This document shows, in pieces, positions 20,871 through 61,034 of a stretch of DNA of 64,000 nucleotides (within the stretch, counting starts at the first letter, position 1; every line of letters begins with the position of its first letter). The notes beneath the pieces are model-generated. The model saw nothing but the letters and a program-made list of their open reading frames with translations. It ran no database searches and had not been told where the DNA came from. Both the position numbers and the translations under genes were made by a program. The DNA comes from Perna viridis (taxonomy: Eukaryota). The DNA lies in NCBI GenBank assembly GCA_037379345.1, contig CM074517.1:43690500-43754499 (forward strand), read 5' to 3'.

Positions 20871-23808
20871 TTTATTGCATCACACTGAGATAGTAGGAAT
20901 TTAAGTAAAGATAAATAAAAATGTCTACATGAACTACAAAAAACCTCAATGTTTAACTTTTGGCATTAACGTTTTTAAGTCAACTTACCAAGGCTGTGGG
21001 GGTATAAGCATGAATTTGTGATGCAATGATGGTAATGACCTAGCACAAGGGGTTCATGTTTAAATGAACTTATCAGAAAACTTAACGTTTAGTTTGTGGC
21101 CACTATCACCAGAAAAGCAGAACATAAGTCTTGCCTTCCGAGACTTTTGTTGCAGGCAGGACAAAAATGAAAGTTGATATGCTGTAAATGACAAGACAAA
21201 TGTTTGAAATATCCCATTTTATTTCGCCATTATTTGAAGTACAATAAGTCTCTCGCTACTCTGATCGGAACAATATTATGTACAGGATATATCATCTAGA
21301 CTTTACAGCACTATAATTTGCATATATTACAAGGATGTTTTAACAAAACATGTTATGCCTACACAAGTTTGCAAAGACAATAAATATTGCACAAAATTTG
21401 GGGAAATTAATTTCCCATCACAACGGAGTGCAAACTTGTATCGTCATACATTTATTTATCAATGCTTCTATTTTTTTTCAGTAAGGGAAATCTGAACTTA
21501 TATTTAAAGAGCTGCCACAAGATTGAAAATTATCTGAACAAATATATGAAGATACTGAATATGGAGAAATGTGTCTTCACCACCCTTCAGGACTGACAGA
21601 TTTGTTCTAATTAGATAGGTGTTCTGTTTTCGTAAATTAAATGTGCATTAAAACTGATTAAAAGGTAATTTGAAAAATTGTAAAATTTGTTATAGGTTTC
21701 AAATGTAAAATATTTCTTCAGAATCAAATTTAGAAGAATCAGAAAGTTATGATTAATTTATAATAGATGTATAACATTTACAGAGGGGCATTATCACTCC
21801 TTTTTTTTTCTTTAAATTTCCATATTTCATAATCCCTGTAACACACATAACAATGGTAAATAAACCTATGATGATTCAAGTACCTAACCCAATACCTCAA
21901 CTACAATCTCACTCAATCCACAATTCACAACCATGAAATACAAAGTCCAGTCTTAGAGTAAACTTTCTTTAGAAATTAAAGGAGCTCAAAATTTCTTCTC
22001 CATTTAAGTTTTTTTTTATTACACAATTTTTTTTTTACTTAGAATATAACATGGTAAATAATCACATTTAAATACTAGATGTTATTGCAATAGTTTTTTT
22101 TGCCTTTTTTGGTCAGATAAAATCTATGTCATTCCAAGACTGGACTTGCCTATTGATTTTGAGTAACCAGAGATGTCTTCAAATTTCTGGATGATCTCCC
22201 TTACAACACAAACTCAAAATTTCAGCATCATCAATATCAATATAATACTGCTTAAATGTAGGAATTCCATATTACAATATACAAATGCACATTATATGAA
22301 AGCAAACAGAATGCACATTAATATATTACTATATTTAGCACTTGTCTCGGCAGTGTTTTTAATTAATAATTATGAAAAACAATAAAATATTAAACACCTG
22401 GCACCATTATGAACACATGTTCAAAGGTGTTCAAGCTAAACTAGATATAAATTTATTGAAACATTTTCTAGAAAAGTATGATATTTCTTTTTGTGTAACA
22501 TTTTTTAAAAAATAATTTTTGAAACTTGGAAAATATGTTTTGTACAAGAGTTAAAATTTCTTTCCAAGATGTGTCATCACAATGATCTGAAAATGAACGA
22601 TTTATTATATCACTCCACACACACTAATACATGTATTGGTACATAATGTTTATACACATTGAACACACAAACTGAGGTATAAATGAACCAATGAGATTCT
22701 ACCACATTTTTTCCATGATTCTAATCCAAGGAAAATAATTCAAAATATTACAGCAATGTACATGTATAAAGGCTAGTTTAATCCATGATATTTGATTTAA
22801 TAATAAATGTTAACATTATCCCTGTTCTTCAAATGAAGAAAATTGGTAATGACAGTATTTTTAACTTTAAGGTTAACAAATTTCGGCAGTTTTGTGGTCT
22901 TGATATAAAATTAGATTCCTAATTTAAAAAAAAAAAACACTTTCTATTGATGTTGTTAAGACAAGACAGATCAATAGATCTTGGTATTATTCAAAAGAAA
23001 TTATGTTCATGAAATCTATCATGAACAAAGAATAAAAAAAGTCTTCCAATAAAAAAATACCTCTTTACTTAAAAAATAATGCTCATATTTTGTGTAAATT
23101 TTCTTTAAGAATCTACAATGCTTTAAGTATTCTTTTCTTGTTGTAATGTTTTTCAAATTTTTCGTCGTCATATTCATATTTGTTGTAGCAATGCTACTAC
23201 ATATACAAGGATTTTAAACAAATAAAGATTCTGATTTTGTATTTGATGAACCAATTTGGATTCAACAAGAAGCATAGCTAATAATGGTATGAACCAGTAT
23301 ACATAAATATAAATACATGATAAAAAATTTACATCCTTTGGTATATAAATGTAACATCTTTTATTTCAGTACAAACGTCTTTTGAAAGAACAGTTTATTG
23401 TTCAGCTTTGCATGTTTAATTTCTTAACACTTCCAGAGATATTATAATGTCAAAATTCTATGAGAACTTCTGTTCATACATTCATTACTCCAACTTTCAA
23501 AATAAGATATTAACAAAAATTTGTACAGGATCAAAGATTCTTCCTTAAATTTATGAACATAATTTTTTTTACAAAACTGAAAGCCCTTTTATATTAAGAT
23601 TAAATTGACTTGATACCATATCACATCAATAGTATTATTCTTGTCATCATAAGCACCTTTAACAATTTACAATTACAATAGTTCCCTAACATAAATATCA
23701 TATCAATCCATCAATAAAATTTAACGTATTTCCAATACATGTTGTTATGCTGTTATAGAATGTCTTTTTTTACAGATCTAAGTAACCTCTAGAGTAAGAG
23801 TTCAAAGT
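20871..23808 (-). other. Probable 3' UTR of the RasGAP gene; end uncertain
   Basis: AT-rich non-coding stretch after the stop; minus-strand AATAAA at 23394-23399, 23360-23365, 22452-22457 and 20871-20876. The site used cannot be read from sequence. Confidence 0.4.
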
Positions 23809-24058
23809 TCAACATGAACTTGTTTTAAATTCTGCTATTTCAGTGGACATAATTGTTGACCTCAATGGACCTAACATTCCATTGTGACTGGACTGAGAAA
23901 CGCTGCGTAGCTGAGTTAAAGCAGTCATAAGTTTGGCATTTGCGTTGTCGAGGGTCTGAATTCTCCTCTCTTGGGCCTCAATGACCCTTTGTTTTTGTCG
24001 AACCAGACTTTGCATATCTTCTTGATCAGCCTTCAATTCTTTTTCCACCATCATCAAT
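23809..24058 (-). CDS. RASAL2: RasGAP terminal coding exon (LMMVEKELK...AEFKTSSC*)
   Basis: Acceptor ctcttttcag, phase 2; 'LMMVEKEL', 'RI.TLDNAN.KLM.AL.QL' and 'EFKTSSC' are family hallmarks; TGA at 23809-23811. Confidence 0.95.
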
Positions 24059-27000
24059 CTGAAAAGAGAAAGGAGAACTCATGAATATGCATGATTAAAT
24101 CCATCTCATTAATATGTATGTGAAAAAGCAATCACAAGAAATATATGCAAAATACACAGTAGTTTTTTTATACAGTTAAAATAAAGACAAAAAATGACCT
24201 TGATGAGAATTTGACGAACAAATATGTGAGCCACTTAATTATGTGACTATGAAAATGAGAGTTAACAAAAATAAGATATTATCTCAGTACCCTATGGTAT
24301 ATATCAAAAGTAAAAATGTTTCTTAAGATTGATTTGATAAGCTATGGTTCTTTGGAGATTTAAGGAAAATACATAAGGTAAATTTTGTGATTAGTTTCAT
24401 CTGAAGACCTACATCTGAATTATATCACTAAAGTTTTAGAGACAGATTAAAAAAAATATCCATGTACATATAGTACCTTGTCAGTGTCCATGTTAAGCAA
24501 AGAAGCAAAAAAAAAAGGGTAAGTGCAAAGCACATTTATGTATACATATATAGAATTATGGTACACTGATTTCCACTTATAGAGGAAAAGCAAAGAGAAA
24601 ACAGTTAAGTTTTAATAATTGATATACATGTATATCTTTGTGTTCCTATATGTCTGTACATATACTGCAACCTCATTGAGCTACTGTGCAATTGCATAGA
24701 AAGTGGAGTAGTTGTTCATGACATAGATTATATCTATTAGAACCATGAACCAACCAGCTATTCTAACGTCAATTAATACATAATTTCTAGGCCTAGTAAT
24801 GGCAGGCCTACTGGTGTATAAGTATTAATACAGATATCTAGCAGACACTTAGAATGATTGACTGTAGTTTTAAGTCCTAGATCAGATTATTTCATGCGTT
24901 TTAGGACGAGAACCTTTGACCAATTGTACAGACCCTGCTTTGTTCTAGTCTAACACCCTGCCAGATGTTTATTATGCTAGTTTACAGAAGCAACAGCCTA
25001 CAAAGAGGCATGTCACCCCACTCAGATATATGAAATTAACTTGAAAAGAAAAATTTATGAAAATGCCTACAAGACCGAGATTGTAACAGCTTGGAACTAA
25101 CTTATGACATGACAGTGTTTTTCTTAATTGTAAATAGCCAATAAGATTTCTTTCAATAGGCATATCCAAATATGGTAAATAGTAATGTGCCTTTTAGGAG
25201 ACTGAAGATTCTACTGCTAACATGGTAGACTAAATACTAAAACAAAGAAGGAAGGTGGATCTATCACTCTATATTAACCAAACCAATCTCATTCTATTGC
25301 TAAGTGTTCATAATTCAAAGGAGTGCAGGAAAAAAGAGGGTACACTGTAGCTTTCAACTCAACTGTCATTTTTTTTTCAATTTTCAATATGATTTAAAAC
25401 AATTTAAAAATTTGGTTTCCTGCTAAGTCTTGCTGTTTTTATTTTCAAATGTAGCATTTCTTTCCTTATTGTTAAAAATAATAATAAACACAAGAAAATT
25501 TATGTAACAAAACAAAAGAAAAATAGAACATCAAACAATTGAGGAATGATGGGAAATGAGGGAATACAGAATAAAGAAGAGAAGAAATGAATGGGGATTG
25601 CACAAAAATATATGGATAAAATAACTGAATAAAAAATACACTAAAAAAGACATGCAAAATGATTCCATGCCTGAAAATAAGATGTTACTAAAAATAGATA
25701 ACAATAGAGAACATGCTATTAAAATAATTAATTACCGTTTATGTAATCGATACAACTGAAATTATAGAATGGCAGCGTTTCGGTATTTTGGTTTAAAATA
25801 GAATTGATCTTTGTGTAAATATTTCTTACATTTCCTAATGAATGAGAGAATTAATGTGTTGGCAACATTTCATTCTTATTTTTTTCTTAAAATTTTTTTT
25901 TCTCACTTTGATAAATAGCATACTTGTCTAGACAATGTAAAAAAATGTTTCATGCTTAACAGTAAATATAAATCACGAAACATTAAATGTATATTATCTG
26001 TATATAGTGTGGTCCTAGTTTTTAAAAAAAGCATAACATGTTAAAACTGTGGACTGGGTGGATACCATTACCAACCAGAAGCTGACAAGGACAGTATATA
26101 ATGAGTTTGATTATCATCCTGTACAAACCAACCCATCATTTAATTTTTTTCTTGAAAAGTCCAATCTATTTAAAATCCATGGCCTGATATTAATAAATAT
26201 CACTAATAAATGTACATTAGATCAATATTTTGGACTTGGATTGTTATCTCAACTTTTTTTTTTTTAATTTGACCTTCAACTTTCAAGGTCAGTCAATATT
26301 CCTACTTTCCCCCTATAGCTGGGTGGTCAAATTTTGATACTGAATCTAACTTTCTAAGTCTGAACACATTAAATATCTTTTTTGAAATTGAATAAAATAA
26401 CAATGAAAGAAATCAAGTCTGATGACATAAAGATTTCTTTCATGATATTCAACGCAGATGAAAATCAAACAACTAGCCACTGTCCAAAAGAAACTACAAA
26501 GAGCTCTACAATGCGGATCTACAGTTGAAAGCCAGGCATGAATTAAAAATAAATGAAATTTCACCACAAATAATAGACGACGTCAGGACGATGACATGCG
26601 GAATCATCTAACCTTTGAATAATTTGTTTCATCTGATCATCTTTTTGGACCTGTTGTTTCCGGAGCCTCTCTTCACTTTCTGACAGACGAACCTGCCAGT
26701 CGTCGACAAGCTGCTGTGTCCCTGTTTCATGTTCCTTTAATCTGTCTTCAGCTTTTTGAAGCCTTTTCTGAGCTTCTATTAACTGTTGCCGTAATAAGTC
26801 AACTTCTTGCTCATACTGGAAGGAAAAGTTTAATATTTATGTCCATTCTTGCTATACCAAATCATGCAAAATATTTACAGTGATATAGAGAATTATGCAA
26901 AAGCCAAAGAAGATTTAATATACAATAAAGTCTATCTAAACCAAACTTTATTTTTTGGACTGTAGATTTGGTTTGGTTTCAACAGTTAAAAACCAATGTG

Positions 27001-30000
27001 AAGTAGCTTCAAAGAGTGTCTGGTTTAGACAGGTTTTGGGTTTATTAAGTTTAATTTAGACAGGTGGTTTATTCAGGGTTCAGTTTAGACAGGTTTTTGA
27101 TTTATTCAGTCAGGTTTAGACAGGTTTCACAGTTAAGATAAATGCATGTACATTTTGAATATTTTAAAATATTGATACTTAACACTTAAGAAAATACATG
27201 TTTACCAGTATCATTTAATTTTACTATAAAAGTTCAGATGACTAATAAATGTAAATGAGATCTCAACGACTAAAAGGACAAATTCCTTCGTTGTAGAAAA
27301 ACATGAAAAGTGCATATATATATATTTTTCAAAATGCCATGAACCAAAAAAGAAAGTAAGATAACAAAGTGGATAGAATACCTCCTGTTTGGTTTTCTCC
27401 TGTTCCTGTATTTTCCTTTGAACTGATTTAATTCCCATATGTACAGCATTTTGTGGAGACAATTTTCTAGAACCAGATTCAGAACTATCTGATCTATCAT
27501 CATACGAGTATTTCCGAGAACTTTGGTCAGGACTGTTAACATAGTTCCTATCACCATAACGACTAGAATTACTTGTAATATCACTATTGCTGTAAGCATG
27601 ACTTGGTCCATAAGTAATATGAGACGAAATATGTGAATCAGTCGCAGTCCTACGAATAGGATCATTAATATATCGTGGCTGTGTATTAGAAAAGTCAACA
27701 CTTCCAGTATGTGTTAGAAGATCTTTGGGTCGTGATGGGGCTCGACTTAGTGAGTAATGATTCGTTCCAGTAGGTGTTACATTACTATTGCGAATATCGT
27801 CACTATTTGTCGATGAAATAGATGAGTGTAATCCAAATTTCACTGGTTCAAGGTTAGATTGCACAGAATTAGATCTAGTGAACAATGACTCTGATGTAGA
27901 CATGGATGAATTTGAACGAGTCATTCTATATTGTTCTTGTTCAAGAGATTCACTACTACTGGAACTAGATAATTTAGGAGCAAGGTTGCGTAACGGATCT
28001 GTACGTTGGGGACTAAACAAGTCGGAGGATTTCACGGGGCTTCTATTTTTAACAGTATCCTCTTCACTACTGGCTGACCCAGAACTGGATCCCTGTCGAA
28101 CCACTTTAGGACTAGAAACAAAGTGCTTTGCACTAGTAAATTGATGTCTATACACAGGATTAGAAAATGACAATGGTTGAAGAGGAGTTTGTGATGTGTG
28201 AGATTTTGATGAAAAGTCATGTGATGCAGGGTCAATAGGTGAACTGGATTGACTGTATCCAAATGACTGGTACCCAGATGAAGCTATCGTCGATAGTTGA
28301 CTAATTGACATCTGGCTTCCGTTCATATTGTGATCAGATTCCATTGATGAGTTATGTACATCCTCATCCGCGAAAGACAAAAGATCAATATATTCTCCTT
28401 GATGATTTTCTGCAACATTCACAATTTCATTCCAGGATTCATTTACTCTTTGTTCATTTGTTTTAACAGAAACATCTGACACATCAAATTTGGAATTCTT
28501 ATAAAATCCAAAATCATCCTCTTCCAAATTATTTTCGGAATCGAACACTCCCGATTTTGAGCCCCTTCGGCCACGTAATACAGGAATATCATCTTCTCCA
28601 CAATGTCTGAGCATTTCCCTGAGTATCTCCGTAGGTGACGTGCTAGCCTGTGGAGGCATATTGACTAGGTTATCATAGATTTGGGATTTCCTATTCTGTT
28701 TTGGAGGAGGCACCACTTGCCCAATATCTGGATTTTCAAATGCTTTCGTTAAATTGCTTAAAATGGTTGGCAATTTTCCAAGACTGGACATGGTTTCCTA
28801 TTAATACAAGTTAACACAATCAAAGTACAATTATTTAATCTATCATCTTATTGGTTAAAAGAAATATCACATTCTGAAATGCAAATAAAAGCAACAAAAT
28901 TTTAAATAATGTCACATATACCCCATTCCTGTTTGGTGCAGGCTTGTTATTTAAAAGTTATCAGTAATAAATGATATAATGCTTCAAGTTTAATGTAATA
29001 TCTTGAACATTCAGTAATCTACATTTGATTAAGAAGTTAAATCTAATTGTGATACAAGATATAGGAATAAACAAATTTACAAGCTGAAAGTTCCAAAAGT
29101 TAACACCCATTAACTTCTGTTATAAAAAAATATTTACCTGATTGCACTTTTCAAGAGATTCAGTTAATAGATTGTACAAGACAGATAGCTCCTTTCCAAG
29201 ATCAATATACCCATCAAACTCTAGAAACTGGTTGGCACCATTTGTTTCTGTTGTCTGCAGAAAAAGAAAATGAAAATTATAAATCATAAATGATAGAACA
29301 AATTTAACAAAATTTGAACAATATAAAAAAAAAAAAAGCTTCTTTTCTACCCTTTAATGTTTTTAATCCAAGAAGAGAAATGGGAAATTGATTCCAGCTA
29401 AAGATCTTTTAAGTTTTGGATTATTCCCCTTACTTTAGCTTCATTTTATCTGAAATCAAATCCATGAATTTAATGGGTTTTTTTTCCATCTTACCGAAAT
29501 TTGTTGAAGAAACATGGTCATACTGTCTCTATGGCGATCAATGAAGTCATTCATAAAGGTCATGTACTCTTCTTTGGCTCCAAATCTTTAACAGATGCAA
29601 AAAAAAACCAGAATGAAATAAAAAAATAAAGAATATTGACCTGTCTATCATTGTATGTAGCATAGTTTTTTTTATTATAATATATTATTGGCACAGAGTT
29701 CAAATTCTTCATGAATTGTTTCTACAGGGAAAATAATTTTTATATCATTCTTACAGGTCTACCAGACAACTTTTCTATATCAATTTGTACCCACTGTTGT
29801 GCTAGGTTTTCCCTCACTAGCCACGAAAGCTCAACTTAACAGGAAATTGATATTCAACAGCAACCAAAATCAATCCAAATTTACTGCACCCTTTATATAA
29901 AGCCACATAAAAATATTTGAAATCAATTCATCATTCGATGGTTAAGATAGTAGTGATAAAATTTGAATGGATAGAATGGCGGAGGAACACGGTGATTCCA

Positions 30001-58700: not shown

Positions 58701-59150
58701 TGCCATTGGGTAGAAAATAAAGTTTGTTCAGTGGTTTGGTAGGAAAGTGCATTCTGACAAAAAATGCAGAGGAGGAGGGGGGGGGGGGGGAACAATTGCA
58801 GTTGGTTTAAAAAGTAAGTCAGGTGATGCCCAGTATAAACAACTGCACTAGAGCTGTAAGAAGTGTGTCCAGTTCCTTGATGTTAAAGGAAAATATATAA
58901 CAAGAATAGGTATGGTGTATATGTCAAAGAGAAAACAACCTAAACAGCATGAAAATGTCAGCCCAAGGTCATCCATTGGGTCTTAAATGAACAACAAGAA
59001 AATTCTCGTACCACAGGGTGGGTTATTGCTGGACCAAAACATCATTATACATAGGTACAGCAAAAAGACTTTCCCCTATATACTAAAGTAAAATAGTTTG
59101 GTTGTTTCAAGCAAAACAAAGAAACAAACACGGCATACAATTCTTAAAAG

Positions 59151-59704
59151 GAGAGGACAAGTAAGACAGCTCTCAAGAAACAACAGCTCACTAACACAGA
59201 GAACAGCACAGAGGATAAAGGCAGAGCTAATGAGAAGACAAGTAAGACAGCTCTCAAGAAACAACAACTCACTAACACAGAGAACAGCATTGAGGATAGA
59301 GGCAGAGCTAAGAAGAGGACCAGTAAGACAGCTCTCAAGAAACAACTCTCAAACACAGAGAACAGCACAAAAGATAAAGGCAGAGCTAATGAGAGGACAA
59401 GTAAGACAGCTCTCAAGAAACAACTCTCTAACACAGAGAACAGCACAGAGGATAAAGGCAGAGCTAATGAGAAGACAAGTAAGACAGCTCTCAAGAAACA
59501 ACAACTCACTAACACAGAGAACAGCATTGAGGATAGAGGCAGAGCTAAGAAGAGGACCAGTAAGACAGCTCTCAAGAAACAACTCTCAAACACAGAGAAC
59601 AGCACAAAGGATAAAGGCAGAGCTAATGAGAGGACAAGTAAGACAGCTCTCAAGAAACAACTCTCTAACACAGAGAACAGCACACAGGATAAAGGCAGAG
59701 CTAA
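59151..59704. repeat. Minisatellite of 78/81-bp units, about 7 copies, 237-bp three-unit higher-order period
   Basis: Unit starts at 59153, 59234, 59315, 59393, 59471, 59552, 59630. Confidence 0.95.
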
Positions 59705-61034
59705 GTTTCAGAAATAAAACAACACTGAACATTCAAATGAGAAAATCCACAATGGGCATTCAAGGTTTACAGCTTTGTGTATATAATTTTAAAACTGTCT
59801 TCACTTAGAAAAAAAATTCTGCATCCAGATGCATCCCTGTTCAGGCAAATTAAGATTACGTAATGTGTATCTTTCTGTTGATTTAAATTTGATTATCAAA
59901 TTTCATGATAAGGAAATTTTAAAAATAGGTACCTACAGCATTGTCAGAATTATAACAAATCTTAAAGTTCTCAAGCAACCAACAAAAATGAGGTAAATTC
60001 AGGGAAGTAAAAACAGTTAAGAACCACTTCAGGGCTATCAATACCTGTAACAGGTGCCCTAATATTTATTTAGCATTAAAACAGTAGGCTACTTACTCCT
60101 CATCAAAACACTCTCATATATATCGAACTATCAAATGACCACTAAATACATCAGAATCATCAGAAAGCTTGACAGAACACTGCACCATCCATCATTTTTC
60201 TGCATTATTTATAAAGGTAACTAATTGATTATTTTCTAACCAAATAAAACTCAAAGAAGATTGATTTTCTTAATGGTTTTCTTTGGCTTCTAAAAGATCT
60301 CATAAAAAATAATTTTAGAAATAAGAAGAAAACATAATTAGGTGCAGAAAACTCAAGTGTTTTAATCAATGATTCTGCAGCACAGTGAGAACAAGAATGT
60401 CTGGATATAAGCAAATTTCCATATAACAAATCATAAAACAAAACTGTAACATTTATTTAGGTGCTTTAATTGAAGAATAAAAAGGCAAGAAAATGCTTAT
60501 TGATTTGTATGAAGTATGATATCAGTCCCCATAAAACCAAACATGCCTACCTTGGACTAGGGGCTGCTACACCTGTCACATAGATCTGGAGAAACTACAG
60601 TATGTACATTGATGTTGGACAACTACATGGCTTAAAGATTCATACAAGTCACTTTATCTCCATGACAGGTGGCAATAAGATGAAAATCAGATGTATGATC
60701 TTAATGACCAGTCTACCATACAAATTAAACCTAACAATGATTTATACAGGAGCCTGGCAATGACAATATCCTGTCAATTGTAAATCAATAACATCACATG
60801 GCTACATTCTCAAGACAGGGCTTGGTTTATTTGTCAAAGATGCAACACAGCACTTCAAATAATGTGAAAAGAAACTCACTAAGAACCAGGCTTTGACATC
60901 AGCACAACCCAAATAGCCTAAGCTTCAAAGTATGGGCAGGATTAGGCAAAAGCTTCATTAGCAGTAGAATACAGTTATGATTTTTGGATAGTGGTCTGAG
61001 TAAGAGTAAAAAGGTAGAATATCTAGGGGAGAAT

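Follow-up and report, generated by a model that had tools for sequence, protein, structure and literature searches.

The 64-kb window (the whole stretch of 64,000 nucleotides analysed here) carries on its minus strand a gene with matches to PH_RASGAP (6.6e-30), to RasGAP on two exons and to DAB2P_C on the last two exons. A C2 domain was absent from the set of open reading frames scanned for domains; full-length bivalve orthologues, which bear the name 'ras GTPase-activating protein nGAP(-like)' at NCBI, contain all four domains, namely PH_RASGAP, C2, RasGAP and DAB2P_C. By its domain set, the gene is a member of the SynGAP/DAB2IP/RASAL2 (nGAP) family of RasGAPs. The penultimate exon (26613-26815) encodes coiled coil, covers DAB2P_C profile positions 391-456 and ends in phase 2, its 3' end reading CAA AG|gt at 26613. 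The last exon starts at 24058 with ag|ATTGATGATGG, and its coding part (23809-24058, minus strand) gives 82 amino acids that form a long helix and finish in ..EFKTSSC before the stop at 23811-23809. Taken alone, this exon was predicted as one long helix (residues 2-58), with a pLDDT above 90 over the first 50 residues. The last intron, which is the subject of this analysis, falls between positions 456 and 459 of the DAB2P_C profile.

To describe splicing at this locus, contigs of four runs from four studies were compared with the window over 23400-28800, the RNA label of these runs being itself a guess. Each of the four runs gave spliced contigs that join 26613>24058 and 27382>26815, both GT..AG on the minus strand. 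Therefore, the runs contain mRNA and the canonical junctions are right, including those which an earlier note on this DNA had claimed for the last intron from the letters of the window.

Some further observations were made at the locus. In the intron that separates the penultimate exon from the big exon, contig depth over 27007-27133 reached 150-450, compared to 45-70 on exons, and many loose ends and rearranged joints were seen there in all four runs, a pattern that resembles a dispersed, transcribed repeat. One contig of the run X1 matches the window from 24164 upward and continues below this position with unrelated letters that are absent elsewhere in the window; an intronic insertion polymorphism may be the cause. 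Outside the coding exons of the gene, the list of minus-strand open reading frames shows two satellite-like regions, with tandem units of the motif ..CDYCEDLYRFGVM.. at 400-1400 and of the motif ..LALPLSxVLFSVxESCFLRAVLLV.. at 59080-59710.

Within the last intron, the minus strand of the window reads tttcag|TTGTATCGATTACATAAACG|gtaatt, which delimits a candidate alternative microexon of 20 nt at 25755-25736. It is flanked upstream by ...cgctgccattctataatttcag and downstream by gtaattaatt. The region of the 3' splice site, ccattctataatttcag, occupies 25756-25775, and the 5' splice site, GTAATT, lies at 25730-25735 and is without a G at position +5. Three GCATG motifs follow in the downstream intron: the first at 25712-25716 (+20 from the donor), the second, as GGCATGG, at 25666-25670 (+66) and the third, as a full TGCATG, at 25651-25656 (+81). 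The letters and coordinates given in the earlier note for the exon and for the three motifs all hold on the minus strand. The clustering of CpGs that it described is also present, with 4 of the 16 CpGs of the intron within 25737-25782. In the 723-Mb genome, the candidate stretch is single copy.

Inclusion of the candidate exon in the window gives CAA AG|T TGT ATC GAT TAC ATA AAC G|AT TGA, thus Q-SCIDYIND-stop, as the 20 nt shift the frame and meet AT TGA in the last exon. The TGA lies at 24056-24054, in agreement with the claimed ending ...QIIQ-SCIDYIND* and its stop at nt 3-5 of the last exon. Conditional on inclusion, the translation is truncated inside the C-terminal coiled coil, and the 82-residue, mostly helical tail is lost, as had been stated for the distal coiled coil and the EFKTSSC end. 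EJC-dependent NMD spares mRNAs whose stop lies at or beyond the last exon junction. The inclusion stop is found right at this junction, and the predicted mRNA should therefore escape this decay, as was also proposed.

How much of this arrangement could be expected by chance was estimated from the sequence of the window. Pseudo-microexons were counted by a simple rule no stricter than the candidate itself, with YAG preceded by at least 12 pyrimidines in 17 upstream positions and a donor agreeing at 4 or more of 6 consensus positions. This rule gave 36 cases in the window, of which the minus strand accounts for 26 and the plus strand for 10; three lie inside the last intron. Among all 36, the candidate alone has three GCATG downstream. 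In total, the minus strand of the window contains 46 copies of GCATG, and the cluster at the microexon is its sole case of three within 110 nt, compared to two clusters of this kind on the plus strand. Exact shared words of 15-16 nt were inside the range of shuffled sequence. The number of look-alikes and the result for shared words would both suit a chance pseudo-exon, that is, an AG...GT pair and GCATG motifs arising from AT-rich intron sequence. As a whole, such sequence-only tests are weak evidence and do not decide the matter. Equally good splice-site look-alikes are common in the window, and the decisive evidence is conservation.

Closer relatives were found by a search with the penultimate exon (26615-26815) followed by contig look-ups, which gave two lineages. 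In this exon the first lineage (L006-L008) has 88% amino-acid identity to the window and the second (L009-L020) about 81%. At codons for the same amino acid, third-position identity between the three lineages is only 41-61%, and neutral sites are therefore near saturation. Every contig of both related lineages carries tttcag|TTGTATCGAGTATATAAAATG|GTAAAT, thus an exon of 21 nt, in the same intron and at a collinear position, located 501 nt into the intron in L006, 832-836 nt in L009-L020 and 857 nt in the window. The core of the 3' splice site (tat..tttcag) and the G|GTAA of the donor are invariant across the three lineages. Between L006 and the lineage of L009/L013, 37 nt are identical, consisting of TTTCAG, the exon and GGTAAATTTCT; nucleotide identity of the adjoining coding exon between the same lineages is only 72%.

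The surrounding intron was then compared by two methods. In a BLAST comparison of window 27000-23700 with the contigs of the relatives, the intron matched only over its first ~85 nt and, in L006-L008, over window 25771-25651, which corresponds to L006 810-943 (72% over 134 nt, E = 2.5e-9). In a tile test, 122 overlapping tiles of 130 nt from the intron of the window were aligned to the introns of the relatives, and only 26612-26480 and 25812-25643 rose above background. The conserved island at 25651-25771 is thus one of the only two conserved parts of this intron, the other being a donor-proximal block at 26480-26612 on the same strand. These first ~130 nt of the intron are kept in the three lineages and contain TTAT.TGTGGTGAAATTTCA, ATGCCTGGCTT and three spaced TGTAG. 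A GCATG at 26599 within this block is common to the window and L006 and reads GTATG in L013.

The motifs downstream of the exon were also kept amid diverged flanks. AGCATG and GGCATGG, i.e. the first and second motifs, are found in all three lineages, with the exception of the single contig L009, which has GGCAAGG. The third, TGCATG, is kept in the L006 lineage and reads TGCACG in L009-L020. Their offsets from the donor are +28/+77/+93 in the L006 lineage and +29/+89 in L009-L020. The proposed exon-shaped element with downstream GCATG thus lies in a conserved island, with two of the motifs in three of three lineages and the third in two. Chance has to contend with a BLAST match to L006 at a collinear position, with identity over 37 nt between two lineages whose synonymous sites are near saturation, with a tile test that singles out the island and with the conserved GCATG motifs. 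Very close kinship of the related contigs is contradicted by the divergence of their penultimate exons. Altogether, this makes a chance pseudo-exon extremely improbable.

More distant orthologous loci were reached via the big exon (27382-28797), namely a metagenome scaffold (L002), Pinctada imbricata (L003) and two further bivalve loci (L004 and L005). All four have an intron at the identical phase-2 position after ..IIQ, and in these four orthologues the 20/21-mer element was undetectable. A metagenome scan with the genomic pattern gave no match, although the JGI contigs reached otherwise contain this pattern. The element is distributed over three lineages of one clade. The comparison of orthologous introns that had been suggested as a check consequently had a divided outcome: exon, splice sites and GCATG motifs recur in two related lineages, and the 20/21-mer is undetectable in the four distant orthologues.

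Differences between the lineages concern the exon itself. The window differs from its relatives by three substitutions (GAT/GAG, TAC/TAT and AAC/AAA), all at third codon positions, a pattern which, with only 3 substitutions, has a chance of about 1 in 27. In addition, the exon of the relatives is one base longer (AAAATG compared to AAACG), and such a one-base length difference between lineages is unusual in a translated exon. In L009/L013, the 21-nt exon encodes S C I E Y I K, followed by TG|A, so that the stop is formed across the last junction. The predicted frameshift thus applies to the window, where 20 nt would shift the frame, and does not extend to either related lineage, where the exon has 21 nt. 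In L009/L013, as in the window, AG|ATTGATGA marks the start of the last exon. Because this start supplies the TGA, immediate termination is kept in both lengths, as read for the 21-nt form in L009/L013 only. The window and L006 are the closest pair among the three lineages, yet both other lineages have 21 nt; for this reason, 21 nt is probably the ancestral length and the frameshift was probably derived in the lineage of the window.

Turning to RNA, the inclusion junctions named in the earlier note were looked for in assembled contigs, with a negative result: contigs of the four RNA-like runs contained neither 26613>25755 nor 25736>24058, and 26613>24058 was the only joint they gave for this intron. 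Minor isoforms drop out of assembled contigs, and this result therefore speaks only of skipping, which dominates in the four runs; contigs cannot speak to an absence of inclusion. Low-depth unspliced contigs run through the candidate in X2 (25415-26314) and X11 (25557-25791), and the 20-nt length is thereby confirmed in two independent runs. At the protein level, a search for annotated isoforms among orthologues found the SCI[DE]YI tail in none of 153 proteins, among which none from the window's own species was returned.

With only skipping seen in these contigs, one can ask whether the island acts without ever entering mature mRNA. It would then be a conserved intronic regulatory element, either a decoy pseudo-exon or a platform for binding proteins (Rbfox or others) by which the removal or retention of this intron is adjusted. 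Conservation of the donor-proximal 130 nt would fit this well, as the whole intron looks regulated, and a non-coding element can more easily absorb a change of one base in length. However, both splice sites are intact and their cores invariant, all three substitutions fall on third positions, both exon lengths lead to immediate termination, and GCATG downstream of an exon is the classic arrangement for activating inclusion. On balance, we regard a purely intronic role as unlikely.

A further observation concerns the end of the exon. In X1, an unspliced contig extending from the penultimate exon (26642>25736) terminates precisely with the final base of the candidate, and the next contig begins at 25727. 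Low coverage, a local polymorphism or a branch of the assembly graph at a used donor could account for this break. It would also agree with the view that the conserved 3' splice site leads into an alternative terminal exon with intronic polyadenylation at its end, all the more as read-through of the GT runs, in every lineage, into a stop within 2-3 codons (..SCIDYINGN* in the window and ..SCIEYIKW* in the relatives). Against this view, neither AATAAA nor ATTAAA occurs within 280 nt downstream in any of the three lineages, the contigs gave no loose end of poly(A) type at 25736, and G|GTAA is invariant, as for a used donor. A terminal exon of this kind is thus highly unlikely.

Three other readings of the element were tried and rejected. 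In the case of an RNA gene or structure, no Rfam family was found below E = 0.5 and no conserved fold was detected. An antisense exon was rejected by eye, as the reverse complement is without AG/GT borders. A recursive splice site was discarded because the junction CAAAG|TTGTAT would not restore a donor.

We consider it reasonably likely, from the pattern of conservation, that 25755-25736 is a genuine alternative cassette microexon of this SynGAP/DAB2IP/RASAL2-family RasGAP. Regarding its regulation, Rbfox proteins bind (U)GCAUG and from downstream positions enhance exon inclusion. The candidate has (U)GCAUG within about 200 nt downstream, and the motifs are conserved in orthologous introns of which the flanks have diverged, two properties expected of Rbfox exons. 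Rbfox would be the most likely control of the candidate exon. In the case of SRRM3/4, the exon lengths of 20 nt (window) and 21 nt (relatives) are inside the range of 3-27 nt for such microexons. The UGC near the 3' splice site that had been taken as an SRRM3/4 motif did not stand up to comparison: in the window it lies at -19 and in L013 at -33 and -51, L006 has none within 60 nt, and the motif is thus not conserved. SRRM-type control is not supported. Searches of the genome with the Pfam profiles Fox-1_C and SRRM_C gave no match, and control genomes were equally silent, genes being matched exon by exon in these searches.

Taken together, the candidate is probably an Rbfox-type alternative microexon that yields a RasGAP isoform truncated in its coiled coil. 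The mechanism could be as follows. The default is removal of the last intron as a single piece, as seen in the contigs. In some tissue or stage, the microexon would be included, aided by Rbfox-type proteins on the conserved (U)GCAUG 20-85 nt downstream. Inclusion would swap the last 82 residues, which comprise the distal half of the long C-terminal helix or coiled coil and the conserved FKTSSC end, for a new tail of 7-8 residues, SCIDYIND in the window and SCIEYIK in the lineage of L009/L013. With its stop at or just past the last exon junction, the mRNA would escape EJC-dependent NMD and remain stable, leading to a truncated protein. The ancestral exon would have had 21 nt with TG|A across the junction. 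After the loss of one base, the shifted frame in the lineage of the window would run into the next TGA that the last exon offers, and the outcome would be unchanged.

Other variants of this tail were encountered in bivalves. In the same last intron, L004 (20539-20676) and L005 (13207-13345) share a different conserved block, with 83% identity over 139 nt, that begins directly after ..acag/..gtag. Read in the phase of the upstream exon, it gives SACQRQNSYKRAVDGDIV in L004 and SSCLRQNSYKRAVDREYV in L005, following the pattern S[A/S]C[Q/L]RQNSYKRAVD..V-stop with an acidic-x-V end. This block is probably another alternative C-terminal exon. A second kind of C-terminal truncation is represented by two proteins that end inside the coiled coil at a point where canonical forms continue with SGT..: a scallop protein (P0067, Ylistrum balloti nGAP-like isoform X7), which ends in ..QEQQSDS*, and a protein predicted from an assembled contig of a sequencing run (P0068, a Logan transcript), which ends in ..KEHESGL*. 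Also, a SynGAP/RASAL3-like protein of 962 aa (P0078) follows the canonical form up to the same ..KTIIE| junction and beyond it reads RSESEVHLVNKVAVAQAENK, which may be intron read-through or an alternative end. Because of the block in L004/L005 and the endings of P0067 and P0068, C-terminal truncation of this RasGAP family may be recurrent in bivalves.

These observations can be combined into one broader reading, which we put forward tentatively and would rate at somewhat less than an even chance. It holds that bivalves of this clade evolved a switch of their own, a microexon controlled by Rbfox motifs, which cuts the coiled coil of their single SynGAP/DAB2IP/RASAL2-type RasGAP, that the exon drifted from 21 to 20 nt, and that truncation is convergent and recurrent, parallel to SynGAP-beta/-gamma. 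In this combined reading, the nucleotides of the microexon would be more strongly constrained than those of the neighbouring coding exon, and the TGA-rich start of the last exon (ATTGATGA) would be what preserved immediate termination through the drift in length. If an invertebrate member of this RasGAP family has a conserved microexon by which half of the same helix as in SynGAP is lost, regulation by tail truncation is either old or has arisen repeatedly, and it could be studied in a system with one paralogue. The locus would furthermore provide a mollusc example, clean and experimentally tractable, of a conserved microexon with Rbfox motifs, and a case of an exon altered by one base in length with its outcome unchanged.

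The candidate can be compared with several known systems. Like neural microexons dependent on SRRM3/4 (eMIC), it is short (20-21 nt), with strong nucleotide conservation of exon and flanks; unlike them, it has no conserved UGC by the 3' splice site and provides no in-frame insert. With cassette exons and microexons activated by Rbfox, it shares a short exon, two to three GCATG located 20-95 nt past the 5' splice site, conservation of these motifs amid diverged flanks and conservation in the flanking intron. As a candidate exon, it differs from them in having only one full TGCATG, which is lost in one lineage, and in bringing a stop rather than an in-frame insert. A full-text literature search for the junction peptide string found nothing.

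Within the same RasGAP subfamily, the C-terminal isoforms of vertebrate SynGAP decide on trimerisation, condensation with PSD-95 and support of plasticity (PMC7314543). SynGAP-beta arises from a frameshifting extension of exon 18 and has a partial coiled coil (Araki et al. 2020, PMC7314543). The likeness to SynGAP-beta drawn in the earlier note thus stands with respect to truncation, as the predicted isoform, like beta, terminates early, keeps only part of the C-terminal coiled coil and loses the normal tail. It fails with respect to mechanism, as beta results from the exon 18 extension (PMC7314543) whereas the element described here is a candidate cassette microexon, the 21-nt form of which in L009/L013 shifts no frame and places the stop at the junction. 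In the case of SynGAP-gamma, a small exon 19 is included that adds a short coding sequence and a stop, and the complete coiled coil is kept (PMC7314543). This resembles the candidate in that, towards the 3' end of a gene from one and the same subfamily, a small optional exon brings a few residues and a stop and so changes the C-terminus; here, however, the cut would fall inside the helix (DAB2P_C profile position 456/459). Sharing sequence with neither of the two, the candidate has its closer mechanistic parallel in SynGAP-gamma and its parallel in outcome in SynGAP-beta.
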